Numbered from the stretch's first letter, positions 21,836-55,065 are shown. The stretch: DNA of 64,000 nucleotides from Phyllobates terribilis (GCF_046119375.1 NW_027362768.1:90272001-90336000); one strand, 5' to 3'. Translations and numbers: made by a program. The notes: generated from the letters alone by a model not told the origin.

Positions 21836-22256
21836 CTAACTCTGTCTGGTGACAGGGGCTCGGCAAATAGGGCAGGTATGAGTTTGTTGAAGCCATGTGT
21901 TTATGCATCCTCTGTGAAATGCGTGCCGGCAACATAAATATCTGATGTCTCTTTGCAGGACATCCATACATATGGGGCAATTATCACACTCATTTTGTGT
22001 GTTGATGGCCGTGGTGGTGGTTTCGGGTTCTCCTCCTGTGGTGTCAGAGTTCTCTAGCTCAGTCCTGCCTGACTGGCTGTTTGTAGGAATGTCAATATTA
22101 TATTCAATATCAATGGTTAGTCTCAGATATCCAGTCGTCTCTGATGACTCGATTCTTTGATGTGCCATGTAATTGTTGTAAATTGATGCAATAAGGGGGC
22201 CAACGTCCTCGATTAGCTGTTGATCACTTGGCACAGCAGAATAGTCTGTCCTTCTC
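21836..22256 (-). CDS. RING-H2 finger protein, main coding exon (copy 1); probable small E3 ubiquitin ligase
   Basis: CPIC-x11-C-x-H-x2-H-x2-C-x10-CPIC at the C-terminus. Acceptor CTTCCAG at 22257-22263 with branch point TACTAAC at 22274-22280. In frame with the phase-2 mini-exon at 22682-22716. Confidence 0.8.
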
Positions 22257-22681
22257 CTGGAAGGTGCATCAGTGTTAGTAATGGGTCTTGAAAAAGAAAT
22301 AGCACAGATGTAATCAACCTATAACAGATCTCTATGGGACTATAACATCAACTAAATGGTACCAATGTCTGGGAAGTCTTATTGGTCCTCACCCTGAGTC
22401 AGTGAGTGTAATGTAGAGGTGTGATTTGTATGGAAATGCTATATGAAGTGTATATTGTGTATGAAACCACTGTGTCCTTTCATCCAGGATCTACATATTA
22501 TCGGGCTAGAAATGTATAGTAGACAAACTACAGTAAGAGAATGGAATAAAGCACGTGACACGTTTTACGGATGTCACAACTCTATATATAGTATACACAT
22601 TGTATTCTTATGTCTTTGATGTAGGTTGAGAATTTGGGGAGGAAGCACTTGGATGGTTGAAATTATCGGAATTTCCGAAAC

Positions 22682-22716
22682 CTGTCGCTCCTCCTGTCTC
22701 TCCTCCTAGGCGGCAT
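22682..22716 (-). CDS. Predicted first coding exon (MPPRRRDRRSD+AG) of RING gene copy 1
   Basis: ATG followed by 35 nt ending AG|GT. Splicing over a 425-nt intron gives a 151-aa ORF. The donor GTTTCG is weak. Confidence 0.5.
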
Positions 22717-23779
22717 GTCGCTAAGTCTCTCTTCTTTACAAATCCTTGTAAAACAAGGGAGCCAAAACACTACGAATGTCTCAATGAGAAGCGGCAGCGG
22801 GATGCTGATGTGGAAGGGTTTAATGCTGAGAATTCTAGATGTCACACTCACCAAAGATCCTTTGTCATGGCGACATTTTCGACACCAGAATCGATATACA
22901 CTGATATTATAACACTAGTGACTAGGAGAACTGGTGTTATATTAGTTATTGCTTTCACTGCACATAGAGAAAAATGGCAATACATGACCAAAACCGCTGA
23001 CCAGTAACGGGACTTTAAGTCCGTACAATCTATGAACCCTAATAATCTGTCTATTCTAACTTTTATACTCTACTAAATGAAATTGTTAAGTTGTCATTAT
23101 CTGAATTTACTTTTTTGGGGGGGTTATTTTCTTTTCTGGGGAGATTATTGTAGGATTTTCATTGGTGGTGTTGCAGGGAGTTGTAGCACTACAGTATTTG
23201 ATAAAAACCCATAATTCAGTCTTCATGCTCTTTTTCTACAATTACTACTTTGAGCGCCCTCATCTGGGACTGACTGACTAAGTTCTGAGTGAGCAACACG
23301 GGTAATGTGTTTAGGAAAATGACATTTAAATATGGAGATTGATTTTACTGGTTTTAAGGAGATTTCCGTTTGTACTGTTTTGAATAAAAATGCAAAAACA
23401 TATAAGGGAAAAAAGTAGCAAGATAACACAGCTCTGGGCCCATTTATATGGTGGGGAGACCCACTATGATAGTGCAGGAGAGAAGGGCAGGACATGAGAA
23501 AAACTGGACAATATAAAGGGGGACATATTGGAAACAAAGAGTAGGGGACAACACACAGGTCAGGTACAATCACCAGCATTCTACTACTACCAGGAAAACG
23601 TGCCAGTTCTTCAGAGGATCTACTATGAGAAGTAGCTTAGGACTAAGGCTGGGGTATTAGTATTTTTAAGAGCACAGAAGGGGGGCACAAAGAGAGATTA
23701 ATAATTTGGAGGTACAAGGAGGTTATTAGCCATCCTCAACTGCATATCTTTTTTTAATTGAAGAAAGCTGGTGGACATA

Positions 23780-25365
23780 CAGTGCCTACAAGTAGTATTC
23801 AACCCCCTGCAGATTTAGCTGGTTTGATAAGATGCAAATAAGTTGGAGCCTTCAAACTGCAAACGAGAGTAGGATTTATGAACAGAAGCATAAATCTTAC
23901 AAACCAAAAAGTTATGTTGCTCAGTTGAATTTTATTAAATTTTAAACATAAAAGTGTGGGTCAATTATTATACAACCCCTATGTTTAATATTTTGTGGAA
24001 TAACCCTTGTTTGCAATTACAGCTAATAATCGTCTTTTATAAGACCTGATCAGGCCGGCACAGGTCTGTGGAGTTATCTTGGCCCACTACTCCATGCAGA
24101 TCTTCTCCAAGTTATCTAGGTTCTTTGGGTGTCTCATGTGGACTTTATTCTTGAGCTCCTTCCACAAGTTTTCAATTGGGTTAAGGTCAGGAGACTGACT
24201 AGGCCACTCCAACACCTTGACTTTTTCCCTCTTGAACCAGGCCTTGGTTTTCTTGGCTGTGTGCTTTGGGTCATTGTCTTGTTGGAAGATGAAATTACGA
24301 CCCATCTTAAGATCCTTGATGGAGGAGCGGAGGTTCTTGGCCAAAATCTCCAGGTAGGCCGTGTTATCCATCTTCCCATGGATGCGGACCAGATGGCCAG
24401 GCCCCTTAGTTGAGAAACAGCCCCACAGCATGATGCTGCCACCACCATGCTTGACTATAGGGATGGTATTCTTGGGGTCGTATGCAGTGTCATCCAGTCT
24501 CCAAACGTCACGTGCATGGTTGGCACCAAAGATCTCGATCTTGGTCTCATCAGACCATAGAACCTTGAACCAGTCTGTCTCAGAGTCCTCCAAGTGATCA
24601 TGAGCAAACTGTAGACGAGCCTTGACATGACGCTTTGAAAGTAAAGGTACCTTACGGGCTCGTCTGGAACGGAGACCATTGCGGAGGAGTACGTTACTTA
24701 TGGTATTGACTGAAACCAATGTCCCCACTGCCATGAGATCTTCCCAGAGCTCCTTCCTTGTTGTCCTTGGGTTAGCCTTGACTCTTCGGACAAGCCTGGC
24801 CTCGGCATGGGAGGACACTTTCAAAGGCTGTCCAGGCCGTGGAAGGCTAACAGTAGTTCCATAAGCCTTCCACTTACGGATGATGCTCCCAACAATGGAG
24901 ACAGGTAGGCCCAACTCCTTGGAAAGGGTTTTGTACGCCTTGCCAGCCTTGTGACCCTCCATGATCTTGTCTCTGATGGCCTTGGAATGCTCCTTTGTCT
25001 TTCCCATGTTGACCATGTCTGAGTGCTGTTCACAAGTTTGGGGAGGGTCTTAAATAGTCAGAAAAGGCTGGCAAAAGAGATCTTTAATCCACATATGTGA
25101 AGCTCATTATTCTTGGTGCCTGAACTACTTCTTAATACTTTAGGGGGACCAAACAGAATTCTTGTGATTTGAGGGGTTGAATAATAAATGACACTCTGAA
25201 TTAACTTTTAACGTTTAAAAAAAACAACAAAAAAAAACAATATTTGCTGCAGTGCATTTCCCACTTCCAGGCTGATCTACAGTACAAATGTCACAATGCC
25301 AAGTTAATTCCGCATGTGTCAACCAGCTAAATCTGCAGGGGGTTGAATACTACTTGTAGGCACTG
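23780..25365 (-). mobile_element. Tc1/mariner element C
   Basis: TIR CAGTGCCTACAAGTAGTATTCAACCCCCTGCAGATTTAG at both ends with TA duplication. The empty site GGACATATCTG is present in unit 2 (~56188). Confidence 0.97.
24087..25016 (-). pseudogene. DD34E Tc1 transposase with one premature stop near the C-terminus
   Basis: [14 protein letters not shown] and SPDLNPIE with 34-residue spacing. TAG replaces the second Glu of MEEWAK. Confidence 0.9.
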
Positions 25366-25507
25366 TATCTGCGGCCATGATCCGCCATCAACTGGCATTT
25401 TGAGAACAGGGGATCGGTGCAGTCTATTAGGAAGTTGTATTAACAAGTGCAGGAGGAGAACCTGTCAATTGAAAAATCAAAGGTTGAATTTACCGGAAAT
25501 CCGGAAC

Positions 25508-25542
25508 CTATTGTTTCTTCTTTCTCTCCTCCTACGCGGCAT
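25508..25542 (-). other. Paralogous 35-nt Arg-rich mini-exon candidate (MPRRRRERRNN+AG), unit 1
   Basis: Lies in a ~400-bp diverged paralog of 22650-23010, with the same length and the same AG|GT position. Confidence 0.35.
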
Positions 25543-25751
25543 GTCTCTCTTCTTTGTGAATCCTTGTAAGACAAGGGAGCCAAAACTCTACAATCCAATA
25601 ATGTCTCAATGAGAAATGGCAGCAGAATCCTGATGTGGAAGGGTTTTGTGCTGAGAATTCTAGATGTCACAAAATCACCAAAGTTCCATTTGTCATGGCG
25701 ACATCTCTGACACCAGAAACGGTGTGCAATTGTATGATAACACTAGTGACT

Positions 25752-28124
25752 AATAATAATAATAATAATAATAATGATAATTTTTATTTATATAGTGCCA
25801 ACATATTCCGCAGCACTTTACAATTAAGTGGGGACATGTACAGACAATAAATCCAATACAAGTTAAGACAGTTTAAACAGTTACATTAGGAATGAGTCCC
25901 TGCGGTCCCTGCTCACAAGCTTACAATCTTTAAGGATATGGGAGGACACAATAGGTGAAAAGTGCTTGTCATTTCAGGTCTGGCAATTATGATTAATAGG
26001 GATTTTCATATAAGGCTGCATGATCCGGTCATCAATCAGTATGTTTAAGTGCAATAATCAAGTATCGAGTGCAGTTATCGTGTGCGTGGAGGGTGTGGAG
26101 ACAGATGAATAGTATGGAGCAGATTCAGAATAATATTTACAAGGAGGGAACAGGGGAAAGTTAGTTTACTGAGTAGTTGAGGTGGTAGGCTTGTTTAAAG
26201 AGATGGGCTGTTAAAGCGCACTTGAAGACATGGGGGCTAGGCATCCGTCAGATCGTCTGGGGTAGGGCATTCCAGAGAACTGGTGCAGCACGAGAGAAGT
26301 ATAGGAGACGGAGGTGCGAGGTTCGAATTATGGGGGATGTTAGTCTTAGGTCATTTGTAGAATGGAGGGCACGTGTAGGGCGATAGACAGAGATGAGAGA
26401 GGAGATATGTGGCGCCCCAGAGGGTTCGGTCGCCACAGAGGTATTGCAGCTCATCCACAAGTGTGGTATCTCACTCTCAGGTAAAGAAGGAATATGGGTC
26501 AGGACCCTAACACTACATCCACTACACCACATTTCCGGGGGACAGGGCGAGATTGCTCCTACGGGAGAGCACAGTCCCTGATCCCTGGCTGGAGTGGGGG
26601 GGAACCACCTAGAGAGGGGGAACTATGTAGTGGATGGGTGGAGAACGTAGATCCTGGGAGCACTGGAGTAGAAGATATAAAAGTAAGGAGCCATCTTAGA
26701 TCAGGCAGACACTCTGTGGAGAAGTGACAGGAGCGCAGGCTCTGCGCGAGCTCTGCTCCACAGGCAGGCCTAGACAGGAGGCCTGAGCCTGAAGGAGGGA
26801 GAAGGGGAGCAGGAGAGGCTCCAGGACGAGAAGAGAAGGGACCCCAGGGGTACGGGCCGTGCAGTAAGCCACCCGTACGCCCGCCGCTGCCAGGAGGTAG
26901 GGGGGTCAGGCCAGAGAAGGGGAACCGGGTCCCCAAGCCAGCAGAGACTACAGGACTCAACTGGGAACCGGAGGCTGCAGCACTTCAAGTACAGCAGGCC
27001 GTCCCCACACCAGCCACCAGGAAGGTAGCCGCATAGGGCCAGGGGACGGAACACACGTCGCCCGCCAAGGCCCGAGGACACTGGACAGAGGTTCCGCTAG
27101 GTGTGAGGTACAAGGAGAGAGGCCAGAGAGGACACACAAAAGGGGGTCCTGCTAAATGCTCCAGAGATACCTGAGGGTCGACCGAGCCCCTTACTGCGTG
27201 AGCACAGGACCCCGTGGGCTCTTACACTGGCCCTGTAACTGGAACTGATTTAACCGTGAGTAAAAGACTTGGGACTGCACTGCAACGTCTCCGTGTTATC
27301 ACTACTGACCCCGGCACTATCACCACCATCATCCTTACACTCTGCCCTGAAGCTCCACTCTACCTGTGGGGAGTTACATCACCTTGCTGCACATACCATC
27401 AGCTTCAGTGGACTGCTCCCCAGCGGTGGTTCCCAATAACCACATTCCACAGGTGGCGTAGTCGGACTATTTAAAACAGATACACATAGACTACCCCTGG
27501 TTTGACCGCCCTGGGTCACGGACCGGGTCGCAGCCACGGTGACTACAACCCCCAGCATTTACAAGGCCCGGCTCCGGGTATCCCCACGGCCCAGGGGGCG
27601 CGTCAGATATAAGGCGGTGCAGAACTGTGGAGAACTTTGTGGGTGAGAGCGATGAGTTTATATTGGACCCTTTAGCGAATGGGTAACCAGTATAATAACT
27701 GGCACAAGATGGAGGCATTGGTGATGTGGCTGGACAGAAATACGATCCTGGCTGCCACATTCAAGACGGATTGGAGAGGAGAAAGTTTGGTGAGAGGGAG
27801 ACTGATCAGAAGGGAGTTGCAGTAGTCCAGATGGGAGTGAATAAGAGCGACAGTAAGAGTTTTAGCAATTTCAAAAGTGAGAAAAGGTCGGATTCTGGAG
27901 ATGTTTTTAAGATGCAGGTGACAAGAGTGAGTGAGTGATCAGATGTAGGGAGTAAAGGAAAGGTTAGTGTCGAATATGACCCCAGGGCAGCGGGCATGCT
28001 GCTTGGGAGTTATTGTTGAACCCTCCAAGGTAATTTCGATGTTAGGTAGAGTTAGGCTAGTAGAGGGGAGAAACACAAGTAGTTCAGTTTTGGAGAGATT
28101 CAGTTTAAGATAGAGGGAGAACAT
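25752..28124 (-). mobile_element. 5'-truncated L2 (CR1-clade) LINE, copy 1, interrupted by solo LTR C
   Basis: LKLNLSKTE, SRLDYCNSLL and LHWLP-type RT C-terminal motifs in the unit 2 copy. (ATT)n tail. Shared by both units. Confidence 0.9.
26408..27605 (+). mobile_element. Gypsy-family solo LTR C
   Basis: TGTGGCGCCCC...GGGGCGCGTCA termini with 4-bp TSD GATA. The empty site is in unit 2 (~57225). Confidence 0.95.
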
Positions 28125-28739
28125 GACTAGTGTAATTGATATATTAGTTATCCCTTTCACTGTATATCGAGGAAAGTGGCAATAAAAGACCAAAACCGCT
28201 GATTAGCAATAGCTTCTGGTATTTTAGGACAGAATTAGCGCAGCAGACTGCAGAATAGGTGTGAATGTGGTCATAGCAATCTGTGATGTAGTTTATCTCT
28301 TACAATAATATAACTATAAAAAACATTAAAGGCAAACTATTTCTATTGTTCATTGCAGGACTTTCTTCTTAATATCCTTATATTAAAATATCATCAATCA
28401 TTTGTATTTAATAATTTAAAGTTAAAGTCCTGCTAAAGAATAGGAAAAATCTTGTGGTATCTTTACAAAGCATTCATGGACAAAAAACGCATATCAGGAC
28501 TGGACCAGTGTCTTCCTTAGGCCACATTATGTAAAAAGAAAAAGAGAAAGGGCGCATGTGTAGACACACAGGGCTGTTTGTATAAATTAAGAGTGCCAGT
28601 GCACTCACCTATAATGGTTGTGTACGTCTACACAACCAAGATTAAGCGTGTAGTTAGAAGGGCTCCGGGTTGCCTCTCACTGTTTATAATGCCGTCCTGT
28701 CTGTGTTTGTGTCGCAACTCCGTGCTCCTTGGATGGGCA

Positions 28740-29873
28740 TGTGGCGCCCTGCTGTTCATTGGTGCCACAGATCCTAGAGGGGTGCATGGACGGATTCCCC
28801 CACAAGAGGCCCTCATAGCATCCACACACCTCCACCTTCCACCTCAGACCACCAGAAGGAGCCCATTTGGGATATAAATAGGGAAGGTGGAGCTAGGCAG
28901 TTCAGTTCCTGAAGTAGATGAGCCTGAGAGAGGTCAGTCTGCAGTGGAGCTCAGTCTAGAGAACAGTTTCCTCAGGGGACAGAGGTAGTTCCAGTCCCTC
29001 TAGAGAGAGTTCAGACTCATAGAGCTCAGGTTAGTGAGCCTAAGGCGTGCCGACGCCATAAGAGCGGTGAAGAGTAGCGAGGCCTACTGCCAGTGTGAAG
29101 CCTAGTGAGGGCCCCGAGCGGCCGAAGGCAAGTGGAGTAAGCGAGCTACATAGGGGGCAGAGGAGCTTAGCCAGCTCACCCCAAGACCATTTACCGGACA
29201 CTGGGTTTGTGTCTGCAAGGATCTCTAGGACCAGCAGAAACAACCGGAACCCCTGGCGAACTATATGTCCCAGGAACACCAGAAGCTGACCGTTATACCA
29301 GGGTCAGGAGTCACTGAGGCCCAAGAAACCTGGGAGTGTGATCTCTAACAGAAGGCCCTACCACCAGGTCAGCCGGTGCAAGACAGAGACCAAGTTAGGC
29401 CTAGCTTCAGGCAGGTCATAAACTTACCAGGAAAAGGCAAGAAGCAGGAGGCCCAACACCTGCTCACTGGGGAGAGTTCTGAAATGCACCCTTCACCCTA
29501 CAGTGCCCTGGATCGTGCCTGAAACACCACCAGTAAAGGTATTGAAGTGAACCGTTGTGAGTGTGCCTAGTCTTCTTCTGACCCGGCTGGGTCCCCTCTG
29601 TCCTGCATCCCTTTTCCTATGCTGCCCTGAGGCCCTGCTCCACCTGTGGGGAGCCGCGCCAACCAAGCTGCCTGACCACCGGCCTCAGAGGACTGTAGCA
29701 GCGCTGGTGATCCTCACCTGACACCATGGGTGGCGTCACGAACTATTACCTATCCCATACACCTTTTCCCCATTCCTTCTTCGCCTTTTAAAGAGTGACC
29801 CCAGGGTACGGGCCCAGGAGCCGGCCACCGCAGCAACCCCCAAAACTAACAGCAAGGCCCGGGCGCCGAGTCA
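28740..29873 (+). mobile_element. Gypsy-family solo LTR D (divergent subfamily)
   Basis: Starts TGTGGCGCCC and ends ..GGGCGCCGAGTCA, with a related 3' block. No TSD was found. Confidence 0.6.
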
Positions 29874-30168
29874 AAATCCCCATCCCCTGTGCACGTCAGT
29901 CACACGATTCTGCCGGACCGGATACCACGTTACCGCAGGTCCTCAGTCGTTTTTCCCGGTGGCTGGGTAACCGCAGGTCTTCAAACCTCCAAATATGCCA
30001 GGCTGCTCCTGCCGCTTAGGCTCCGTGTGGAGATGTCTCACATGTAAACAATGGTACAGCGGTCTCAGGGAGCGCCAAAGGAATACTGGACAAGTAAATG
30101 GATAATAACCGACCTTTATTCTTCCTCCAATGCCACTGCCACAACGCGTTTCAACGGTCTAAGCCGTC

Positions 30169-30211
30169 TTTACCTGATGAAGACCGCTTAGACCGTCGAA
30201 ACACGTTGTGG
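30169..30211 (+). ncRNA. Minimal hammerhead ribozyme motif
   Basis: TTTAC-CTGATGA-A-GAC..GTC-GAAA-CACG-TT-GTGG. The opposite arm preserves CGCG at helix III. Confidence 0.6.
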
Positions 30212-30689
30212 CAGTGGCATTGGAGGAAGAATAAAGGTCGGTTATTATCCATTTACTTGTCCAGTATTCCTTTGGCGCTCCCTGAGACCGCTGTACCATT
30301 GTTTACATATTAGGCCACATTATGGGATGGAGAAGACACTGGTTCAGTGCCAAAACACGTAGCTGGTTTACTGTTTTCCCTAATATCTCATTAAATGTTT
30401 GAAAGACTTAGACAATAGTAAAGGGTTTCTTCCACTGCTTTTCTTTTATTGATCTATTGTAAGGATAGTTCATCATTATTAGATCAGTGGTGGTCTGACA
30501 TCCAACTATCAGCTATTGAAAATGCTGGTGACAGCCAGATGTTAGCAGTTGTAGAGCTGAACAGCACAGTTATGTCAACCATGTAGTGGCTGTTGTCGGG
30601 TACTACACATATACCTCTATTTAAATGAATGGAGGCGGATATGTAGTACCCGGCCATAGTCATGTCCTGGTTTAGTTCTTGCAAAATTC

Positions 30690-31068
30690 AATGACGCAAT
30701 TCGCAAAAAAGTCATTGTACGTTCTGGCGCATTCAGGCATCTGCTAACACAAGAAAGAAAGACATTAGCAATGATCTTAGAGAAGCAATTATTGTTGCAC
30801 ACCAATATGGGAAGGGTTATAAGTTAATTTCCAGACAACTTGCAGTCCATTATTCCACAGTGGAAAGAATATTCACATATGGAAAACATTCAAGACAGCA
30901 TACAATCTTTCCAAGAGAAGACTTCCCACCAAAATCACCCCAACATCAGACCATGCAATGTTCAGAGAAATTGCAAAAAAAAAAAAAACATCAAGAGCTA
31001 CAACTCAGATTCTACAAGCCTTAGTTAACTCGTTAAATGCTCAAGTTTTTGAAAGTACAATTATAATA
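30690..31068 (+). mobile_element. Old degraded Tc1 relic (5' part), shared with unit 2
   Basis: RKDISNDLREAII.AHQ.GKGYK.ISRQLAVHYS-like translation. The counterpart in unit 2 runs ~58540-61740. Confidence 0.7.
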
Positions 31069-32685
<1,617 letters not shown>

Positions 32686-35361
32686 TACAGAATTTAGTTG
32701 CTCACCTTTCCCCTTCGCTCTCAGCTGTTCACAGTGCTGCTATTAGTCCTGCGTAATCACAATCCGACCCCCCATTCTGGGCACACATCATTGGCAGTTT
32801 CCATAGCAATTCTCCCAATCATAGCACTCACTTTCCTGAGCAGTGTGCTTGTTCAAATGCAGTTATTGCTATATGTAACCATAGTGAAAAAAATGTAGAC
32901 TACAACAAACACTGATAGACCAGTAATGTATAGTAGCAATAGTAGAGAATAAAGCTGCTCACCAGTACTGTCACTCAAGGAGGAGCACCTTCCCCCCACA
33001 ACAAGGTGCTTGCATAATAATTTATGGGGGCAATGAAAGAGGAATCTGGGACTTAAGCAGGTGGAAAATTACTATGTAAAGGCTGGAAAGTTGTGAGATA
33101 TGCTCTTCTTTGACCCGACAATTATTATTTTTTGTTTTGGGGGGGCAATTACAACTACTGCTATGGGGCCCCATTATTTCTATGTACGCCCCTGCCTGTG
33201 ATGTATATGCACCAGCGTCTCCTGAGATGTGTATGCCTCAACCCCAGTGTATCCTATGTGATGTATATGCTACAGTCCGAGCATCTCCTGCTTAATGTAT
33301 ATGCTCCAGCCCCAGCATCTCCTCTGCTATGTATATGCTGCAAGCCCAGTGTCTCCTATGCGATGTATATTCTCCAGCCCCAGTGTTTCCTATGCCATGT
33401 ATATGCTGCAGCCCCAGTGTCTACTCATCACATCCCAGCCTCAGTAAAGAGAAGCAGTTCCAGCCATCACATTAGGGGCGAGTTAATTAAATGTTTGACA
33501 AAATATAGCAGGATAAATTTCAAGTTGATAATTTTGTAGTATGAGTATGAGTATATACTGTAGGGAAAGTAAAACAAGGGAATTAATGTGACACAAATAT
33601 GAAATTAAACAAGGTTTAATAGTTGAATAGGAGCATCAACTGTGGATCTAGGTATTACCAATCAAAGAGTGGAAAATATTTAAGGAGAAAATTGCTCTAT
33701 AACTTACCAGGAAAAATTACAACACTAATAGTGATATACATAAGTGGGAATCAATAATAAACCCCATGTTACGGAATATGGTAGTAAATAGTGATGAGCG
33801 AGCACTAAAATGCTCGGGTACTCGTTGCTCAGGTTCAGCAAATTGGAATACTCGGGTGCTCGACCCGAGCAACGAGCCCAATGTAAGTCTATGGGAAACT
33901 CGAGCATTTTTCAGGCGGCTCCCCTCCGGCAGTCTGCAGAGGGTCTAAAAATTGCCCAAATCGATGGGAACAGTGCTCAAATGACGTGGGGACAGCATGG
34001 GCAAGACCCCTGGAAGCATTTCTGACTCCCAGGTCACTTCTGACAACAACGCCACTATATTTCCCGGTATCGCCTCCGCCTTCCACAAGCACGGGTCCCA
34101 CAACATTACCCGTGCCCTCCCCAGTGCACTTACTGGAAAGGCCCGCCTAACCACAAACACGTGGACAGGTGAATGTGGACAGGGATGGTACGGAGCCAGT
34201 CCACAACTTTTTTTGCTGACAGTAGTATTTAGCTCAGTGAAAGGACTGGCATTGAGGGAAACCCTATCTACCCTGCATGTCATTTCTCCCAGGAAGTCCT
34301 GTAATGCAGCTTGTTGCAGAAGCAATGGCAGCCCATCCAACATCAACTCGCCCTTGTCGGTGATGCTTTGACACACAAACATCTTTCTTTGAGCATTTAA
34401 TTTCTTGGATACAGAGTTGGACAATAGCCTGATCTGTAATGCGGTTTGAGAAATAACATGCATAAGCATGGCCAATCCTCATTAAAAAAGCAGCCGTAAA
34501 GTGTCCGGGAACCTTCCCCCACACTTTTCTTAGCCAGGGCTGCTTTTCGGCAGGGTTGGACGGGCCCACCAGAGAACCGGAGACTCCTCCGGCGGGTCCT
34601 GGCTTCTCCTTCAGGAGAGTTCATAGTGCCGAGGTGAGGCCATGATGATGATAGAGGCCACCATCTGCTTAGTTTCCTGTTACTTGGAATGCAATTGCAA
34701 GTATGCAGCCAGAAACCCACCCACCCACAGGCCGCAACACTAAACTGCCAGATTTCTGGGCAGCTTTTTGCACTTGAAATATGGCCTTTTAAGCTCCTGG
34801 AGGAGGAAGCTTTTCACAACCTCATGCCGGCGGCAGTCGGGTGTCCATACTCGGTCCCCAGCCGCCGCTATATTTCCCAGTGTTGCCTCCGCCTTCCACA
34901 AGCACGGGTCCCACAACATTACCCGTGCCCTCCCCATTGCACTCTCCCAGGAAGTCCTGTAAAGCTGCTTGCACTTGAAATGTGGCCTTTTAGGCTCGTG
35001 GAGGCAGAAGCTTTTCACAACCACATGCCTCATGTCCATACTCGGTCCCCAGCCGTCACTATTTCTCCCGGTGTTGTCTCCGTCTTCTACAAGCGTGGGT
35101 CCCTGAACATTACTGCTGGTAGTTTTCTGTGGGAATTTGCTTGCCTCCTACCAGCCTGGAATATTTCCAGCAAACTATGGTATGACTCCATGGTATTAGC
35201 ACTGCCCCCAGTACCAGTAGCAAAGCCATCCCCAATTTCCTTCTCAGGAATTTTATTTGGTAGACTGAGTGGCTGCCCAAATACATTTTCTCACAAAGGA
35301 GCTGAAGATAAAGTGGCAGTAGGTGCAAGTTTCTCCAGCCTGTTAGATATTAGAGGGTGAA

Positions 35362-38149: not shown

Positions 38150-38168
38150 TGGCGTAGTCGGCAGGATT
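38150..38168 (+). promoter_or_regulatory. Primer binding site complementary to the tRNA-Ser 3' end
   Basis: TGGCGTAGTCGGCAGGATT is the reverse complement of ..AATCCTGCCGACTACGCCA, the vertebrate tRNA-Ser 3' end as recalled from the human sequence. Confidence 0.85.
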
Positions 38169-38233
38169 GTGACCAACCCGCCACAAACGGGTACTGCGTG
38201 CCTGAAAAAGACTGTACACGTACCTTAAAAAGA

Positions 38234-42500: not shown

Positions 42501-43309
42501 CAGAGAAAATGAACAATATCGTCATTGATCTCCTCAAGACGTTACCCCTGGAAGAACGCAGCCTGTGGCCGGAGAAGCTGCCAGATCTGATTGACTTGTA
42601 CAACCACATCCCGGTGAATGCTACAAATTGCACCCCGGCTTACCTGATGCGAGCAAGACCAGGTAAGCTGCTGATCGACCTGGAGATGGGAGTCCTGACA
42701 CCCGAGGACACCTCCCCAGATGTGGACTGGGATACGGAACGGCGGCTACAGTACAAGAAGGTACAGGAGAGTGGGGAGAGGAGTCTGGCTCAAGCGAGAG
42801 AAAAGCAAGAGAGGCTCTTCAACCAACACGCTCCTGCTGGTCCCCTGGAACCTGGTGAGCAGGTTCTGAAGCGGAAGAGAAGGTTACACAAGCTGGATGA
42901 CCAGTGGGAGAGAGACCCGTACACAGTACTGCAGTCCGACCATGACAACCTGAAGGTATGTGTGATTACCAAGGATGGAGGAGAAACCACTAGCACCGTC
43001 TCAAGAGACCACCTAAAACGGTGCCCCGAGCAACTACAGAGTCCAAGTGAAGATCAAGATGACCTTGAACCCGCAGAGGACAAGGAAGAGATGATCAGCA
43101 CAGTTCTCGGAGAGTTCCCCCGGACCTGGACTCAGATAAATGGCGCAATAGTGGTACCTGTCCTACACTTCCTTCAGCCTACCCAGCAGGAGCCTACAGG
43201 AGGACAGGAAGAACAAGAAGAGCAAGTGGCCCAGAGGCGGAAGAACCCACGCCAGCAGCCCAGGATAGTCAACCCTCTGCTGACAGTGAGCCTGCCATGC
43301 CTGCGGTAA
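39581..43309 (+). pseudogene. pol: Gypsy pol (RT, RNase H, integrase) with stops and frameshifts; no protease DTG motif
   Basis: SPWAAPLVLV, CVDYR, LDLTSGYWQ, MPFGLCNAPGTFQR, YLDD, TDAS, LEFLAVVW, VALDH, LTDQGPAFE. Confidence 0.92.
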
Positions 43310-44945
43310 GCCAAAGGACCCGCAGACAGCTGCCTGCCCTGCCTGTATGCCCAGCTGGTAGCTGTACCCTCAATGATAGTGGGGAAAGCCAGGTTGGTCC
43401 ACCACCAGACAGTGGGTTAAGGAGGTCAACCAGGAGCACTAGGGGTCAAACACCAGCTCGCTGGAGGATATAGGTACAAGATCTAAATGTACCATGTATA
43501 TATTTAATATGTTTGTTACCTGTAACTAATAGTGTTTTCTCCAGTTTGTCTAGATATATGGACTGACAGGTTATGAACTTTGGATAACCGGAACTACATT
43601 GTAAATAGTTGCACTTGGTGCCTCTTGCGAAGACGGCCACGGAAGAAAAACCTGTCTGGCGTGGTCCCGAGTGGTCCAAAGTAGTTTGCTTCGCCTTGCA
43701 GCCATGCCCAGGGCCAACGTTTGGGGTTTGCTTTGGACAGGTCCCCGCACCGGTTGAGACTTCGCCTTATTGGGTGAAATGGACACCCGGTCACAGGCCA
43801 TACTGTGACCTAAAGAACTCAATATGTGGTGTGTTTGTTTGTTATTTCTTTCTCTGTTGTGTTTATGTTATAATTTATACCCTGTATCGTGTTTCTTGTT
43901 TAGTCCCGGGGTACTAAGCTTTCCTAGGGGGGAATGTGTCACCCCAGGCCTGGATGCCACAAACTTGTAAGGCTGTGTCTGAGAGCAGGAGGGAGGTTCT
44001 CTGGTCATGGACCATTTGCATGCAGCACCTCCTGTCCCAGGCCAGTAGGGGAAGCAGGCTGCCCCTATAAAAACTGGTACTGAGGGCAGGGTTAGGGAGA
44101 CCAAGACCCACTTCTGAAGCATCCAGAAGGGTTCCCAGAAGAGAGGGACAGGTCAGCCGCAGCTGAGGAGTCCAGGAGGCAAAGGAGGAACAGAAAGCCA
44201 GGGACAGAGGTGACGAGAGCTGGTCCTGGCAGAGAGAGACTACACAACCGGACACTGGGGTCCGAGGCTGTCAGGGTTGCAAGCCCTGCAGCAGATAACC
44301 AACCCGCAAGGGATTTCAGGTCCCTTGGCCAAGAAGCCTGGAGGCTCCGCCACACAGAGGGACCGGTACAGCACGGAGAAGCTACAGGTACCTAAGGCCC
44401 GAGTCCCAAGCCATACAGGCGTAGTACACGGCAAGCTCAGGGACGTGGGCTATCATACCACTAAAGGGGGAGATAGTCAGCAAGGGCAGAGAGAGAACGG
44501 TAGGCCTACCCTCTCACCCTGACCAGCGGAGCTCGCCCGAATGCCCTCAGACACCCAGGTCCATTCCTACCCTGTACTCCTGGTGGGTCTGTGATAAGAT
44601 CTGCAGTAAAAGATCCTGGACTGCATTATTGGACTTTGTGTGGGTACTGCTGCGCCTGCACCATCACCCCCAGCATCCTATTACACTGCCCTGAGGCTAC
44701 ACTCCTCCCGTGGGGAGTTGTACTATTCCCTGCTGCATCCCCAACACCAGCCTCAGCGGTCTGCCTTGCAGCGGCGGTCCTCCCTGGCAGCAATCCACAG
44801 GTGGCGTAGTCGGACATTACCTAAAACATATAAAAGACTGCCACTGGTCTGACCATCCTGAGCCACGGGACCGGGTCGCCACTACTTCTCCCAGCATTGC
44901 CCTGAAGTCCGGTGCCAAGTGCCCCACGGCCCAGGGGGCGAGTCA

Positions 44946-47900
44946 CTATCATTCGGTGGTGTTGAGAAGTCTGGCCCAATCCAGCCCTTGTACATTTTTA
45001 TAAGAGTCAGCCTGTCAGCATTTTCAGTTGACAGGCGGATGCGCTTATCAGTTCTAATTCCACCAGCGGTACTAAAAGCCCGCTCTGATAAAACGCTTGC
45101 GGCAGGGCAGGCCAGGACCTCCAAGGCATAGAGAGCCAGTTCATTCCACGTATCCAGCTTGGATACCCAATAATTATAAGACACAGTGGAATCACGGAGG
45201 ACGTTGGTACGGTCGCAGTGTACTCCCTCAGCATCTTCCCAAACTTTGCTCTCCTCGTGAGAGTACCCCGCGCCTCAGGGTCCGATGGGAGGGTCTGAGA
45301 AAACTCTCCTAGAACTTTGACAGTGTTCCCCTGCCTCTGCTGGATTGAAGTTGTGTCTCTCACACCTGTACTCCTTGGTTGTCCAACGAAGTGTGCCCTC
45401 TGCCGCCAGAGTTTTCAAATGGGAATTTTTTTAATAGTTCCGCAACAAGGGCCTTCTGGTACAGCCCTATTTTTGTAGACCTGTCCGCCTCAGGAATAAG
45501 AGATATAAAGTTCTCCTTGTAGCGTGGCTCTAGAAGTGTAACCAACCAGTAATGACTGTCACCCAAAATTTTGAGAATGCGAGGGTCATGGGAAAGGCAG
45601 CGTAACATAAACTCGGCCATGCGTGCTAGACTACTAACAGGCAAGACTTCCGTGTCCTCACCAAGAGGATGACTGACCATGCTCTCCTCCTCCTCCTCTC
45701 TATCCTCTGGCCATCCACTCTGAACAGACGGTATGACAGCTGTGCAGGTAGTACCATCTATAGTGCATGAAACTAGCTCCTGTCCTTCCTCCTCCTCCTC
45801 CTCTTCATCATTGTCACCCAATACACGTTGGGATGAGATAAGGCTTGGCTGTGTGTAATCACCCTGTATGGTTCCTTTCTCCATCTCATCGTGCTCCGCC
45901 TGCAATGCATCCTCTTTGATTGTGAGCAGAGAGCATTTCAGAAGACAGAGAAGCGGGATGGTGACTCTAATTATGGCGTCATCGCCGCTCACCATCTTGG
46001 TGGAGTCCTCAACGTTTTGGAGGATAGTAAATATGTCTGACATCCATGTCTACTCCTCAGGTCTTATGTGTGGAGTCTGAACAGAATATCGACGGCCTTG
46101 TTGATGCTGGTAGTCAACAACTGCCCTTTTCTGCTCACAAATCCTTCCCAACATCTGCAGTGTAGAGTTCCAACGCATGGGGATATCACACACCAGTCTG
46201 TGAGCCGGAAGCTGCAAATGCTGCTGAAACACTGCAAGGGCGGCGGAAGCTGTAGTTGACTTTCTAAAATGGGCACACAGGCGGCGTACTTTAACAAGCA
46301 GATCTGGCAGCTCTGGGTAGGATTTGAGAAACCGCTGAACCACAAGGTTAAGCACATGGGCCAGGCATGGTACGTGTGTGAGCTCCCCTCGCCTCAGAGC
46401 CGCCACAAGGCTCCGGCCATTGTCACACACGACCATGCCTGGCTGTAGGTTCAGCGGTGTGAGCCACAGATCTGCCTGCTCTTTCAGAGCTGTTCACAAC
46501 TCTTCAGCATTGTGCGTTTTTTCACCTAAGCATATTAGCTTCAGCACAGCCTGTTGCCGCTTGGCCGAGGCAGTGCTGCAGTGCTTTCAGCTTGTGACTG
46601 ATGTGGTCATTTCGGAGATGGAGGTTGAAGAGGAGGAGGAGGCTGAGGAGGATGAGGTGCAGGAGCTGTAGACCGTGGGGGCAACCCTGATAGACCAATC
46701 CTTGGCGTCGGGAGGATGTGTTCCGTCCCAAGGTCCGACTGGGTCCCGGCTTCCACTATGTTAACCCAGTGTGCCGTCAGCGAGATGTACCGTCCCTGCC
46801 CACAAGCACTTTTCCACGTGTCCGTGGTTAGGTGGACTTTACCGGTAGCTATGTTGTTGAGAGCGCGGCTAATGTTTTGGGACATGTGATTGTGTAATGC
46901 GGGGACGGCACACCGGGAGAAATAGTGGCGGCTGGGGACGGAGTACCAAGGGACGGCCGCCGCCGTCAGGTTGCAGAATGCTTCCGTCTCCACGAGCCTA
47001 AAAGGCAACATTTCGAGCGCAAGCAGTCGTGAAATGTGAGAATTTAGTAGTGTGGCCTGTGGGGCGTTGGCTGCATATTTGTGCTTGCGTTCCAAGGACT
47101 GGGGTATGGACAACTGAACGCTGCGCTGGGACAAGGACATGGACTTGCTTCCTGATGCTGCTACTTGAGAGTGTGCAACAACAGGTGCAGGGCAGGAGGC
47201 ATCTTCTCATGCACCATGGACAGGGGATTGGCTTGCATGCATAACAGTTTAAGACGCAATGGTGCCACCAGCAGACACTGTTCCTGGACCCTGGGGTTCG
47301 GCCCACAAAGTCGGGTATTTTGCTGCCATGTGCCTGATCATGTTGGTGATGGTCAGGCTGGTCGTTTTGCCACCCCTGCTGATGCTGGCCTGACAGGTCT
47401 TGCAAATGGCCTTTTTGGGGTTATCGGCAGAGTCTTTAAAAAACAACCAGACTCGGGAAGACCTAACTGTTGTACTGGCAACTTCCTTCGTGTTGGTGTT
47501 ACAGGGAACGGTTGCCTGCCTTCTGTCTGCGGCCACCACCCTGTTTCTTCCTGCCTGTTGGGGTGCTCTGCCTCCCTCCCCCTGTGTGCTGCTGTCCTCG
47601 CTCTGCATGTCCTCCTGCCAGGTTGGGTCAGTTACTATATCATCCACCACTTCGTCTTCCACTTTCTCACCCTGGTCCTCCTCCTGACTTTCTGGCAATT
47701 GTGTCTCATCATCGTCCACCTCTTGTGACACTTTCCCACTGTCGCCTTCGTGTGACGGTGTCTGCTCAAATATTTGGGCATCGCTACACGCGATCTCCTC
47801 TTGCCCCGCTACAAGTGGACCGGGCAAGAGGCCCGAATGTATAAATGGAAAAGTGAACAGCTCTTCAGAGTGTCCACGTGTGGGATCAGTTGTCTCTGGG

Positions 47901-48238
47901 TACTCGGCATGGTGGAAGGAAGGATTATCAGGGTGAGGTATATGCGGTCCAGACTCAAGGCTACTGAGACTTGACCGTGTGGAAGACAGGGTGGTGGTGG
48001 TGGTGGCTAAGTGATTGGAAACATTATCTGCTATCCAACCAACAACCTTTTGACACTGCTCTGGGTTCAATAGTGGTGTGCTGCTGTCCCCTAGAAATTG
48101 GGACAGGAAGGTCAGGCGAGAAGATGTGGGTGTTTGTTGTGGCACAATTTTGGCTTGCCCACGGCCTTGTCCTCGGCCTCTGCATGCACCATTACCATCA
48201 CGTCCAGTTTCCCGTCCCTTGCCACGTGCCTTGCCCAT
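44946..48238 (-). pseudogene. BED-finger hAT transposase of hAT2, frameshifted
   Basis: VWLFF..CKTC BED finger, HLTTDTW, VVCDNGRSL, CLAHVLNL, MRWNST and hATC ASVLSERAFS, spread over six ORF pieces. Confidence 0.92.
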
Positions 48239-48289
48239 TTTAAATGGAGGACAGTATCTTCCACGCTCACTACAAATGACTGAGTTTGG

Positions 48290-49095
48290 AGCGAACTTAT
48301 ATGTGATCCTTGTGACGGAGAAAACAGAGTTTTAAATACCTGGCCTGTAGGTAAGTAGTTTGAACAGCAATCTGGTGTCAATTGCTTCACTGACACACTG
48401 AAATTTTTTTTTAATGGAGGCCAGAAATGGCAGTATTTTCTGAAAATGTATATGTAATCCGTGTGATGGAGAAAAACAGTTTTAAATACCTGGCCTGTAG
48501 GTAACTGTTTTGAACAGCAAACCAGGGTCAAAAACTTTGCTGACACGCTGAAAAAAAAATTTAATGGAGGCCAGAAATGGCAGTATTTTCTGAGAACATA
48601 TATGTGAGCAGTGTGACAAAGAAAACACAGTTTTAAATACCTGGCCTGTAGGTAACTATTTTGAACAGCAAACCAGTGTTAAAAATTTGGCTGACACACT
48701 GAAAATTTTTTTTAATGGAGGCCAGAAATGGCAGTATTTTCTGACAACGTATATGTGATCCGTGTGACGGAGAAAACACAGTTTTAAATACCTGGCCTGT
48801 AGGTAACTATTCTGAACAGCAATCTGGTGTCAATTGCTTCACGGACACACTGAAAATTTTTTTTTAATGGAGGCCAGAAATGGCAGTATTTTCTGAAAAC
48901 ATATATGTAATCCGTGTGACGGAGAAAACACAGTTTTAAATACCTGGCCTGTAGGTAACTATTTTCAACAGCAAACCAGGGTCAAAAACTTTGCTGACAC
49001 ACTGAAAATTTTTTTTAATGGAGGCCAGAAATGGCAGTATTTTCTGAAAACGTATATGTGATCCGTTTGACGGAGAAAATACAGTTTTAAATAGA
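48290..49095. repeat. ~151-bp tandem array (~5.3 copies) upstream of the hAT2 ORF
   Basis: TTTAAATA recurs at 48331, 48481, 48632, 48783, 48935 and 49086. Confidence 0.92.
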
Positions 49096-49775
49096 TGGAT
49101 TTTTAGCGCTGTAATATGGAAAGGACCTGGCTGTATTCTGCAGTGCCAACAAGCAAATGGCGCAGAAAAACCATGTTCTCTGGAATGCTTTTTATGCAAA
49201 TAATGAGGATTAAGATCCAAAGAAAAGTATTCCTGGCCCCTGAGACCTGGGCCTTTGTATAGAAATATCTAACAGCAGCAGAAGGCAGAATGGAGCCTCT
49301 TGTGCTATATGCACTGCAGTCTGCTATATACACTGCCTGCCTATATACCCTGCCTGCCTGATATCTCTGCAGATGGATTAGTCCTCAGAAGGACTGTTTG
49401 TTAAGATGGATATGTGTAATGTATGGTTTTTCTCCCTACACTACATAATACACAAGCAAATCTCTCCCTAGCTCTGCAGCACCTCTCCCTACACTGTGTG
49501 ATCCGGAGTGACTGTGGCGAGCATGGCGGTGCCAGGTTTGATATAGACCTGATGACGCTGGGTGGCTAGCCAATCACTGTAATGCCCACAACCAATATGG
49601 CTACGGCATTACAGTGCATGGCAGGCAATCCCTGTATGTTCATTGCAGGGAGGGGACCCGAGTTCCTGCCCGAGCAACCTGGAAATACTCGGCGAACGCC
49701 GAGCTTGTCGAGCACCATGATGCTCGGGCGAGTACCGAGTAGTGGCGAGCACGTTCGCTTATCACTAGTAGTAAA

Positions 49776-51988: not shown

Positions 51989-52571
51989 ATATATCAGTTT
52001 TATCTATTTATGAACTTGAATAAATCTTTTGAAGAAGAAAACCCCTTTTTTTGGATAATCATTTCCTGTGACCCTGGGAGCGCTCAATCAGCCGAATACA
52101 CACTCTGAACCAAATTAAATACTCTGATAGTTAATAAATGTGCACATAAATAAAAAACTGAGCTCTGTCCATGTAAAATATACATAATTTTTTATATACA
52201 AAATACAAGAGGATGTTCTATGAAATGAAATATTTTTATTTAAAGTGGTAGATTAAATTAAGAATAAAAATTGTATTTTATTGTGAAAGTATCCCTCTAA
52301 TTGGAGATTTGTAATTTGGATGAAAAAAACAAGCTAGGTCACGATTTGTTCAAAAGGCCAAATAATAGATGTTGCAGGAGCGGCATCATCAGATCACCGG
52401 TGGTGTGGCAGGATCGGCATCATCAGGAAATGATTGGTGGCGTTGCAGGAACGGCATCTTCAGAAATTGTTTTGGTGTGGAGCCAGGTGCAGCCTCTTCA
52501 CAAGTTGTTTGGTGTTTCAGGAGCAGTATCTTCAGAAGTTTGTTTGGAAACATGTTAGAAGAAGCATTTTC

Positions 52572-52980
52572 AAATGTTATTTAGTGGTAAGTTAGGAGTG
52601 TAATTTTCAGATGTTGTTTGGTGGTAAGTTAAGAGCGGCATTTTCAGATGTTCTTTGGTGGTAAGTTAGGAGCGGCATTTTCAGATGTTCTTTGGTGGTA
52701 AGTTAGAAGCGGCATTTTCAGATGTTCTTTGGTGGTAAGTTAAGAGCGGAATTTTCAGATGTTCTTTGGTGGTAAGTTAGGAGCGGCATTTTCAGATGTT
52801 CTTTGGTGGTAAGTTAGGAGCGGAATTTTCAGATGTTCTTTGGTGGTAAGTTAGGAGCGGAATTTTCAGATGTTCTTTGGTGGTAAGTTAGGAGCGGCAT
52901 TTTCAGATGTTCTTCGGTGGTAAGTTAGGAGCGGAATTTTCAGATGTTCTTTGGTGGTAAGTTAGGAGCAGCATTTTCAC
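52572..52980. repeat. 37-bp tandem array (~11 copies) present only in unit 2
   Basis: GATGTTCTTTGGTGGTAAGTTAGGAGCGGCATTTTCA repeated head to tail with no spacers. Confidence 0.95.
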
Positions 52981-54181
52981 TAGTTGTTTAGTGTCATATT
53001 AGAAATGGCTTATTTAGAAGTTGTTTGGTGGTATATTAAGAGCAGTATCTTCAGAAGTTGTTTGGTGTTTCAGGAGCAGTATCTTCAGAAGTTGTTTGGT
53101 GTTTCAGGAGCAGCATCTTCAGAAGTTGTTTGGTGATATGTTAAGAAACGCATCTTCAGTAGTTTTTTGTTCTTGTGTCGGGAGCAGCAACATTAAATGT
53201 ACATTGGTGGTGTGGCAGGAGCAATATCACTGTCATCTGAAAATAAGCACACAAATCTGTCAGCGGGCATTTTTGTTTTTGCTATTTAAACGAATTCTTC
53301 CCATCACATCAGGGACTAACAACTGATGTGAATTCCTTCTTACAATTTACAGTAGAAGATGGATGCCTATACATATTAGATAAAACCAAAGAATTTATGT
53401 AGAATTTAGCAACTTTCTAATGTGACGTTTGGCCGCTGAATTCTCTCCTTGCTGGAAAAGTTGATGAAAGCAGAGTTGGATTTTACATGCCCCATTTTTG
53501 GTGCCCACTGAAAATATTTTTTAGATTACACCATAAGTTATATTAGTGAACTTATAATACTTCTATGTATCTCAATGAAAATGTAGCATTGTTAAACATT
53601 GATTTCCTGGCGATATGTTTTGTTTTTAGCCAAACACGTTGGTTTGCTTTTTACAATTGTGAATCTGTGGAGGACAATACGGACATTTTTAGAACAGTAA
53701 AGAAGAGACAACTCCCTTAATGTGTATGGCAACCTAGATTGCCTGAAACATAATAAATATGGTGAAATCTGCAACAAGTGGACTGTAGAGAAAGATTTAA
53801 ATTAGTAAAGACAAAGTTACTCATTGAGGAGACTTATAACCAGACAATGCTTCCCAGGAAAAAGGGTGTGCAAATTATCCTCTCTCAAAAGAAAGAAAGG
53901 GAACTCTCTTATGCCACATATAGGCCTCAAAGGTCATTGTCAATTCCAGAATGAGTCTTGCCACATGACTTAGGAAAAAGGAAAATATCATAATCTGCAC
54001 ACAGCTGTTTCACTTCAATGCAGCTAAGCTGCAATACCAGACACAACCATGGACAGATGGGGCACTGCACTACACTAACCTATAAACTACCAGATTTTTT
54101 CACATCAAAATATTTGCAGCATTTACTATACATACTGTTGATATATTGTATCATATTTACAATGTATATAAGTACACGTAC

Positions 54182-54605
54182 CTAATTCTGTCTGGTGACA
54201 GGGGCTCGGCAAATAGGGCAGGTATGAGTTTGTTGTAGCCATGTGTTTATGCATCCTCTGTGAAATGCGTGCCGGCAAGATAAATATCTGATGTCTCTTT
54301 GCAGGACATCCATACATATGGGGCAATTATCACACTCATTTTGTGTGTTGATGGCAGTGGTGGTGGTGGTTTCGGGTTCTCCTCCCGTGGTGTCAGAGTT
54401 CTCTAGCTCAGTCCTGCCTGACTGGCTGTTTGTAGGAATGTTAATATTATATTCAATATCAATAGTTAGTCTCAGATATCCAGTCGTCTCTGATGACTCG
54501 ATTCTTTGATGTGCCATGTAGTTGTTGTAAATTGATGCAATAAGGGGGCCAACGTCCTCGATTAGCTGTTGATTACTTGGCACAGCAGAATAGTCTGTCC
54601 TTCTC
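54182..54605 (-). CDS. RING-H2 finger protein, main coding exon (copy 2)
   Basis: All eight Zn ligands are conserved. Same CTTCCAG acceptor and TACTAAC branch point (54623-54629). Predicted 152 aa with exon 55031-55065. Confidence 0.8.
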
Positions 54606-55030
54606 CTGGAAGGTGCATCAGTGTTAGTAATGGGCCCTGAAAAAGAAATAGTACAGATGTAATCAACCTATAACAGATCTCTATGGGACTATAACATCAG
54701 CTAAATGGTACCATTGTCTGGGAAGTCTTATTGGTCCTCACCCTGAGCCAGTGAGTGTAATGTAGAGGTGTGATTTGTATGGAAATGCTATATGAAGTGT
54801 ATATTGTGTATGAAACCACTGTGTCCTTTCATCCAGGATCTAAATATTATCGGGTTAGAAATGTATAGTAGACAAACTACAGAAAGAGAATGGAATAAAG
54901 CACGTGACACGTTTTAGTGATGTCACAACTCTATATATAGTATACACATTGTATTCTTTTGCCTTTGATGTAGGTTGAGAATTTGGGGAGGAAGCACCTG
55001 GATGGTTGAAATTATCGGAATTTCCGAAAC

Positions 55031-55065
55031 CTGTTGCTCCTCCTGTCTCTCCTCCTAGGTGGCAT
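55031..55065 (-). CDS. Predicted first coding exon (MPPRRRDRRSN+AG) of RING gene copy 2
   Basis: 35 nt ending AG|GT, with a 425-nt intron identical in length to copy 1. Confidence 0.5.

Follow-up and report, generated by a model that had tools for sequence, protein, structure and literature searches.

Two tandem copies of a RING-H2 coding exon in the poison frog Phyllobates terribilis and a homolog in a tree frog

Introduction

Whether a short RING-H2 reading frame that occurs twice in the genome of the poison frog Phyllobates terribilis belongs to a gene, and which part of a gene it would then represent, is the question raised by a 64,000-nucleotide (nt) stretch of DNA (GCF_046119375.1 NW_027362768.1:90272001-90336000), hereafter called the window, whose positions are counted from its first letter. 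An earlier note on this DNA, made from the sequence alone, had described two intact minus-strand copies of a complete, minimal and lineage-specific gene for a RING-H2 E3 ubiquitin ligase (E3), expanding by tandem duplication. Translation, homology searches, transcript-type contigs and a comparison with the tree frog Litoria incline us, with somewhat better than even confidence, to see in either copy the principal coding exon of a RING-H2 E3 gene that is small, unannotated, encountered so far in hyloid frogs only, and recently duplicated in tandem. The earlier interpretation stood with respect to the intact small RING-H2 protein, the tandem duplication, some degree of constraint and the lack of an annotated ortholog, whereas its gene model found no support and its lineage scope was too narrow. 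Such a gene would add an unannotated, frog-restricted member to the very large and well-known class of RING-H2 E3 ligases, and would be an example of small-gene multiplication in a 12.6-Gb, transposon-rich genome. It opens no long-standing question; tandem duplication of RING-H2 genes and orphan N-terminal regions are both common.

Two RING-H2 exon copies with intact reading frames

Searches with tblastn found two copies of the exon within the window, and these are the sole ones. The exons and their RING-H2 domains, the latter placed by residue in their open reading frames (ORFs), are as follows.

21836-22287, minus strand: copy 1 of the RING exon (exon R), 452 nt, composed of 2 nt finishing a codon, 149 codons and TAG
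54182-54636, minus strand: copy 2 of the RING exon, 455 nt, with one Thr codon more than copy 1
21860-21985, minus strand: RING-H2 domain of copy 1, zf-RING_2 E 1.6e-11, residues 91-132 of the ORF at 21839-22255
54206-54331, minus strand: RING-H2 domain of copy 2, zf-RING_2 E 9.8e-13, residues 92-133 of the ORF at 54185-54604

Both minus-strand ORFs are open in the frame given by the earlier note and are 97% identical to each other, and their intactness was confirmed by translation and by a match of each to the Pfam family zf-RING_2 (PF13639), with scores of 44.7 bits for copy 1 and 48.6 bits for copy 2 that both exceed the gathering cut-off of 27.3. The eight zinc ligands are all kept, as had been noticed before, and their spacing, C-X2-C-X12-C-X1-H-X2-H-X2-C-X10-C-X2-C, is identical in copy 1, copy 2 and the Litoria homolog described below. 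Both copies also have the residues that contact the ubiquitin-conjugating enzyme (E2): an Ile in C-P-I-C, a Trp within T-W-L and a Pro in the second C-P-I-C. Directly behind the last Cys comes a "linchpin" Arg. The earlier count of differences between the copies, made by eye, proved exact over 139/140 codons: five synonymous and four non-synonymous changes (D>N, D>N, C>S and S>N) plus the insertion of one Thr codon. The C>S change adjoins ligand C3 and does not hit a ligand.

Sequence and translation place the stop codon TAG at 21838-21836 in copy 1 and at 54184-54182 in copy 2. In copy 1 a donor GT follows directly after the stop, at 21835-21834, and in copy 2 the corresponding sequence reads TAG/GTACGT (here and below a slash marks an exon boundary), with GT at 54181-54180. 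The acceptor of copy 2 is intact (tttttcag/GG, AG at 54638-54637), whereas the canonical acceptor AG of copy 1 is lost in this assembly (caA/G at 22289-22288), the nearest AG being displaced by 1 nt, at 22288-22287.

A homolog in Litoria and the search for relatives

A word search with the 139-amino-acid (aa) translation of the exon gave no match. The HMMER search, which covered 1.84 billion representative proteins, returned 15,374 hits, all of them to the RING alone and none covering the N-terminal 90 residues, and a profile search with the window copies and the Litoria homolog found no further member. The absence of an annotated ortholog, stated in the earlier note, thus held in the word, HMMER and profile searches. 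Among the 1.84 billion representatives the sole specific relative is P0017, a 131-aa ORF on contig L001. This contig comes from SRR32377442, which is given as Litoria verreauxii alpina genomic data in PMC12171712. Because intron-like sequence lies on both sides of its exon, L001 was treated as genomic DNA.

Besides the RING spacing already mentioned, P0017 has the same short first loop, the same E2-contact residues and Arg, and the same tail as the window copies; a motif scan found this tail, C-R-A-P-(V/I)-T-R-Q-x-stop, in P0017 only among all fetched proteins. The architecture of the exon is likewise the same, with a tttttcag/G acceptor, a frame that is open from the acceptor and a stop codon that abuts a GT donor, and L001 aligns with both copies from the pyrimidine tract and CAG/G through the ORF to TTAG/GTA, its donor being GTAGGT. 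P0017 differs in that overall identity is 39% and in that its N-terminal part is about 25 codons shorter and barely alignable; moreover, the ATG from which its ORF was called falls within the pyrimidine tract and is an unlikely true start. In L001 the exon contains no in-frame ATG ahead of the RING, which requires a start codon farther upstream.

Over the 54 ungapped codons of RING and tail, differences from Litoria fall 15/9/29 at codon positions 1/2/3 (chi-square p 0.003), and the excess at third positions has p 0.003 for copy 1 and 0.0008 for copy 2. The ratio of non-synonymous to synonymous divergence (dN/dS) over the same codons is 0.20-0.25 with dS >1 (Nei-Gojobori). Outside the RING, the reading frame stays open in 0.5% of composition-matched shuffles for copy 1 and in 4.4% for L001. 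Dendrobatid and pelodryadid frogs are both hyloids. The conservation in Litoria together with the codon pattern therefore suggests that the family is a real protein-coding gene, older than the split between dendrobatids and pelodryadids, whose exon architecture has been kept. We regard this comparison as the strongest evidence for a gene, and the "lineage-specific" of the earlier note, which had meant one species, is to be widened to at least two hyloid frog families.

Several other candidates were rejected as relatives. The proteins P0001-P0005, which stand at the top of the HMMER list, are multi-RING proteins with scores summed over their repeats (for example, Nymphaea KAF3773437.1, with eight RING repeats); these list-toppers come from plants, spiders and metagenomes (water lily and a spider among them) and are not specifically related. 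P0114 (136 aa, with the same loop length) is taken for a generic RING; it stems from some other organism and lies on an AT-rich, compact contig with an RPB10-like ORF adjacent. The Logan contig L002 (SRR12404963), compact and AT-rich, carries a 136-aa RING-H2 ORF with an equally short first loop at 150-560 and, beside it, an ORF resembling the RNA polymerase subunit RPB10 at ~600-835, and its source is an unrelated small-genome organism or virus.

Transcript evidence and exon boundaries

The run listing for the organism returned eight DNA runs and four small runs that were guessed to be RNA, and the contigs of these four were aligned on region 20400-23800. The longest records (17-18 kb) are as large as a mitochondrial genome, and the contig totals amount to ~150 Mb, both of which fit transcriptomes. 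Besides two short pieces, the contigs cover 21835-22286 only, and none lies on 22338-22680, on 22680-22793 or on the rest of the flanks in this region. One of the short pieces is a 57-nt contig piece from a single run, at 20608-20664. The other, at 21661-21700, is a 40-nt abundant repeat: just downstream of the copy 1 exon, 32-40 nt of this sequence recur inside many contigs of varied flanks (depth 20-630) in the four RNA-type runs, as a segment of a repeat that is expressed and very common.

The junctions lie at 22284-22286 and at 21835/6, beside ttctttttcaag or tttttcag and beside TAG/GT, respectively, and a pyrimidine tract with AG stands at the contig limit in copy 2 (tttttcag/GG), the corresponding letters of copy 1 being tttttcaA/G. 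Since the contig limits match the pyrimidine tract and AG on one side and TAG/GT on the other, the transcribed unit is best described as an internal exon, with a length of 452 nt, or 455 nt in the case of copy 2. The last three bases of exon R are the stop codon, which abuts the GT donor in use, and the RING exon is hence not the end of the transcript, unlike in the earlier model. One contig runs on upstream of the exon into 66 letters that are foreign to the window. The upstream exon contained in it ends ...ACT G/ in phase 1, and its frame is open over the 30 letters shown. Its best partial match in the window lies at 59388-59377, inside a Tc1 ORF (12 nt, E 0.06), and an origin from that ORF was rejected, as there is no convincing fit to the Tc1 protein frame.

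In one contig (run X9, depth 3.2), position 21835/6 is joined back to 22286/7, so that the alignment "goes back 452", with one ambiguous letter. This junction, with a side of 41 nt, was seen once, in one run. The joint can be read as TAG/GACCC, a canonical junction provided that the copy expressed carries CAG in place of the CAA of copy 1 in the assembly. The body of the contig carries letters of the copy 2 type (the Ser codon and the extra Thr codon), and its start piece has the copy 1-type A at 22286. As copy 2 lies upstream of copy 1 on the minus strand, the junction would most simply result from read-through splicing from the upstream copy 2 exon to the downstream copy 1 exon across 32 kb; otherwise it would stem from a circular RNA. 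The stop codon abutting a donor in both poison frog and tree frog, together with this exon-to-exon junction, would form a small example of tandemly arrayed exons joined by read-through or circular splicing.

The letters of the contigs form a mosaic of copy 1 states, copy 2 states and private ones, and therefore other paralogs or alleles would be those seen expressed. Seven variants were recognized in the contigs, all of which keep the frame and four of which are synonymous. The transcripts are rare and heterogeneous.

The start exon and the earlier splice model

The features that bear on the start of the gene are listed here.

22682-22716, minus strand: 35-nt ATG "exon 1" of the earlier note for copy 1, a candidate that ends in phase 2
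55031-55065, minus strand: 35-nt ATG "exon 1" of the earlier note for copy 2, out of frame with the canonical acceptor of copy 2
22653-22924, minus strand: 272-nt module around the earlier exon 1, with older paralogs at 25482-25752 and 56307-56577, ~80% identical

In the earlier model the 35-nt exon was spliced over a 425-nt intron to an acceptor inside exon R, and the motifs on which it was built are all present in copy 1 (ATG at 22716-22714, GT at 22681-22680, TACTAAC at 22280-22274 and CTTCCAG ending at 22257), with the ATG of copy 2 at 55065-55063. The splice had been inferred rather than observed. Three contigs pass 22257 unspliced and end at 22284-22286, none lies on the ATG exon, and the joint 22681/22257, at which junction reads were to be sought, occurs in no contig of the four runs. 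The "nuclear" location rests on the same candidate exon. That exon, ending in phase 2, is in frame with the acceptor at 22257 and with the shifted AG of copy 1, but not with the canonical acceptor common to copy 2 and Litoria, which requires phase 1; in copy 2 such a join would therefore meet a stop after four codons. The paralogs of the surrounding module lie 2.8 kb upstream in each duplicated unit and have ATG and GT at the same places, and the 35 nt of exon 1 are conserved no better than the rest of the module.

Behind the canonical acceptor the exon begins with the last two bases of a codon, and an exon spliced to it from upstream must therefore end in phase 1. Litoria has a possible 13-nt mini exon of this phase at 133-145 of L001, in frame and 67 nt before the acceptor, which has the 10-nt GCGACATGCC in common with the earlier exon 1. 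As evidence for a shared exon 1 this match was rejected as not significant, since 25/300 shuffles match as well (p ~0.08). Judged by its sequence, then, exon R appears to be coding over its whole length, with a start in phase 1 and a stop codon at its end; the start codon would lie in a short exon upstream of it, and at least one non-coding exon would follow.

Tandem duplication and the surrounding transposons

Oriented alike and at a distance of 32.35 kb, the two exon copies lie within two large units, U1 and U2, that self-comparison revealed together with a bracketing repeat and several transposons.

20351-33492: duplicated unit U1, collinear with U2 at 93-98% identity
52112-62825: duplicated unit U2, collinear with U1 at 93-98% identity
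19276-20319, 33007-33790 and 62340-62825: copies of repeat R, ~0.5-1 kb, 93-94% identical
24087-25016, minus strand: Tc1/mariner (Sleeping Beauty-like) transposase, 309-codon ORF, in a stretch that only U1 has
31387-32466, plus strand: Tc1/mariner (Sleeping Beauty-like) transposase
58975-59926, minus strand: Tc1/mariner (Sleeping Beauty-like) transposase, split into two overlapping frames
37175-44659: Ty3-type long terminal repeat (LTR) element in the 18-kb spacer, with LTRs at 37175-37889 and 43937-44659, ~97% identical

The tandem duplication of the exon, as previously proposed, is borne out by these collinear same-strand blocks, which are bracketed by direct R repeats in the manner of a tandem segmental duplication. 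Along the window the segments follow each other as R-U1-R-(18 kb of transposons)-U2-R, and U1 and U2 are thus not strictly adjacent. In addition, U1 is interrupted by stretches that are missing from U2, including the Tc1/mariner elements at 31387-32466 and at 24087-25016, the latter of which, being confined to U1, would have inserted after the duplication. The ORFs of the Ty3-type element (PNMA-like gag, reverse transcriptase, RNase H and integrase) are separate, and its reading frame is therefore broken into pieces; the spacer also carries a BED-finger ORF and satellites. We propose that the locus was duplicated recently, in line with a non-coding divergence of 2.4-3.3%, and probably by unequal recombination between the flanking copies of R, and that transposons would have inserted thereafter.

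Selection and state of the two copies

Between the copies, dN/dS is 0.22, with five synonymous and four non-synonymous changes over 92 and 325 sites (Fisher p 0.028), and the sole indel is a whole codon, in frame. With these values and the similar ratio and third-position excess against Litoria, the "some purifying selection" of the earlier note found support, and constraint may be taken as established for the family and as no more than marginal for copies 1 and 2. The polarity of the changes was read with Litoria and the RNA-type contigs as outgroups. By this measure three changes are derived in copy 1: its acceptor AG is lost (22288 G>A), its donor is weaker (+5 G>A), and a Ser beside ligand C3 has become Cys. 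Copy 2 looks intact; it has both splice sites, and three changes to Asn are private to it.

Predicted protein and known systems

As predicted, the C-terminal RING-H2 would hold two zinc ions and would recruit and activate an E2~ubiquitin conjugate, while the N-terminal ~95 residues would form the side that binds the substrate. The roles of the E2-contact Ile, Trp and Pro and of the Arg are established from RNF4, RNF38 and c-Cbl. That the frog protein is an E3 ligase is inferred from family membership. The N-terminal part, which is probably the substrate side, is acidic, beta-prone and fast-evolving, with alternating hydrophobic and acidic stretches. Stretches resembling SUMO-interacting motifs are found in the window copies (T-I-D-I-E..N-I-D-I) and in Litoria (L-V-V-H-I-D-N-D). 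A bolder extension of the favoured reading, which we consider a long shot, would see here an orphan family of hyloid-frog E3s with a fast N-terminus, serving either as a miniature RNF4-like SUMO-targeted ligase or as a ligase evolving in a race against viruses or transposons, the tandem copies being regularly co-transcribed and spliced exon to exon or circularised.

The nearest solved RINGs are those of active E3s, namely ZNRF3, RNF38, Arkadia/RNF111, RNF126 and RNF165. The frog domain shares with them the C3H2C3 pattern, the E2-contact Ile, Trp and Pro, the Arg after the last Cys and the C-terminal position, but in its first loop, with 12 residues from C2 to C3, it is shorter by two, and the protein as a whole is far smaller than ZNRF3, RNF38 or Arkadia and without similarity to them outside the RING. 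RLIM, RNF6 and Praja, to which the protein had been likened, also have a C-terminal RING-H2 of similar spacing (RLIM E 2e-7, Praja-1 E 3e-8); they are several hundred residues longer, however, with no N-terminal region in common, and RLIM and Praja rank below ZNRF3 and RNF38, so that the likeness ends with the RING. The remark that proteins with such fingers are far longer overlooked small vertebrate RING-H2 proteins such as RNF11, RNF181 and RNF24/RNF122, which have ~150 residues and one C-terminal RING-H2. The frog protein is similar to them in size and layout, although without sequence relation outside the RING (the RNF24 RING matches at E 1.2e-8), and neither a transmembrane helix nor a PY motif was seen in the frog exon. 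As RING-H2 proteins of this size exist, a "mini" E3 is not unusual. Similarly, in multi-RING proteins and in plant ATL genes small RING-H2 units often multiply in tandem, as they do here.

Alternative readings

Several observations weigh against the reading of each copy as the main coding exon of a small E3 gene. The RNA nature of the four runs is a guess, and their data are assembled contigs, not reads, at a depth of 2-4. The contigs are identical to neither window copy, a 29-mer of the upstream exon carried by one of them was not found in the window, and no convincing candidate emerged when the window sequence upstream of either copy was scanned for mini-exons with an ATG and a phase-1 end. 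Copy 1 is without the canonical acceptor AG, the coding divergence of 2.1% equals that of the non-coding sequence around the exon (2.4-3.3%), so that recent constraint rests on the nine changes, and AlphaFold2 on the three-sequence alignment yielded no usable model (predicted local distance difference test, pLDDT, 36). Alternatively, the copies may be young, transcribed but non-functional duplicates turning into pseudogenes, with the working member elsewhere in the genome and the intact ORFs reflecting youth, a reading that we consider unlikely and yet the one to be taken most seriously among the rivals. It accords with the equal divergence of coding part and flanks, with the damage to acceptor, donor and ligand-neighbouring Ser in copy 1, with the three private Asn changes of copy 2 and with contig letters found in neither copy, which point to expression of other paralogs or alleles; the off-window upstream exon with its 12-nt Tc1 match would suggest chimeric transcripts. 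The synonymous excess between the copies (p ~0.03), the whole-codon indel and the intact splice sites of copy 2 argue against decay, but a divergence of 3% often leaves a 150-codon ORF intact by chance, and the alternative therefore keeps weight.

The complete two-exon mini gene of the earlier note, with a product of 151 or 152 aa, an acceptor at 22257 (54606 in copy 2) and the RING exon as the last, appears improbable to us. In its favour, the join is in frame in both copies, the older module paralogs retain ATG and GT, and Litoria has GCGACATGCC with a possible mini exon; this Litoria match and the evenness of conservation across the module lend the 35-nt exon no particular support, however, the three contigs that cross 22257 continue into 22258-22285/6, the conserved acceptor of Litoria and copy 2 sits 30 nt upstream with the frame open there, and the end of the exon serves as a donor. 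The notion that the exon is cargo of a mobile element, that is, a gene fragment captured by a non-autonomous DNA transposon or similar and spread by transposition, would fit the weak 25-nt arms at the ends of L001 (72-75% complementary), a 66-82-nt patch that lies upstream of the exon in the window and downstream of it in Litoria, and the density of Tc1, LTR and BED-finger elements in the region. We consider it very unlikely, given that no convincing inverted or direct terminal repeats were found around the exon in the window, that only two copies lie in 64 kb, both in 11-13 kb collinear blocks that fit segmental duplication, and that a host gene is what the conservation of the splice sites and the codon-position pattern would fit. 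We consider it just as unlikely that back-splicing of the single exon into a circular RNA of ~452 nt yields the main product, with the coding capacity secondary. This would explain the contig that joins the last base of the exon to its first, and ~452 nt is a typical size for single-exon circles; but that contig is one, from one run at depth 3, its copy 2-type body and copy 1-type start piece fit linear read-through between the copies, no strong reverse-complementary repeats flank the exon, and the coding sequence is under selection. The small E3 gene with exon R as its main coding exon is hence the reading that we retain.

Other features of the window

Outside the duplicated units, an unbroken ATG ORF of 1090 codons at 8048-11320 on the plus strand has a BED zinc finger as its sole Pfam domain (E 3e-10). 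Another ORF with a BED finger occupies 47249-48238 on the minus strand and comprises 329 codons; these ORFs may represent intact or domesticated transposases of the BED/hAT type. In a GC-rich stretch at 13378-13497 on the minus strand, 120 nt match the eukaryotic small-subunit ribosomal RNA with 63 bits, above the gathering score. This fragment is isolated, and it spans model positions 28-600 and hence has a large internal gap.

Satellites were observed at 3713-4870, 16783-18591, 7096-8055, 48259-49098 and 52429-53131. A unit of ~29-30 bp is common to two arrays 13 kb apart, and the other arrays have units of 110, ~151 and 37 bp, the 37-bp array lying inside U2, where U1 has a short stretch only. 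In addition, two pairs of inverted repeats, both of which are taken for transposon copies, are present at 1503-2443 and 2675-3640 (~950 nt, 95.5% identical, close together) and at 11723-12926 and 26420-27607 (~1.2 kb, 73% identical, 13.5 kb apart).

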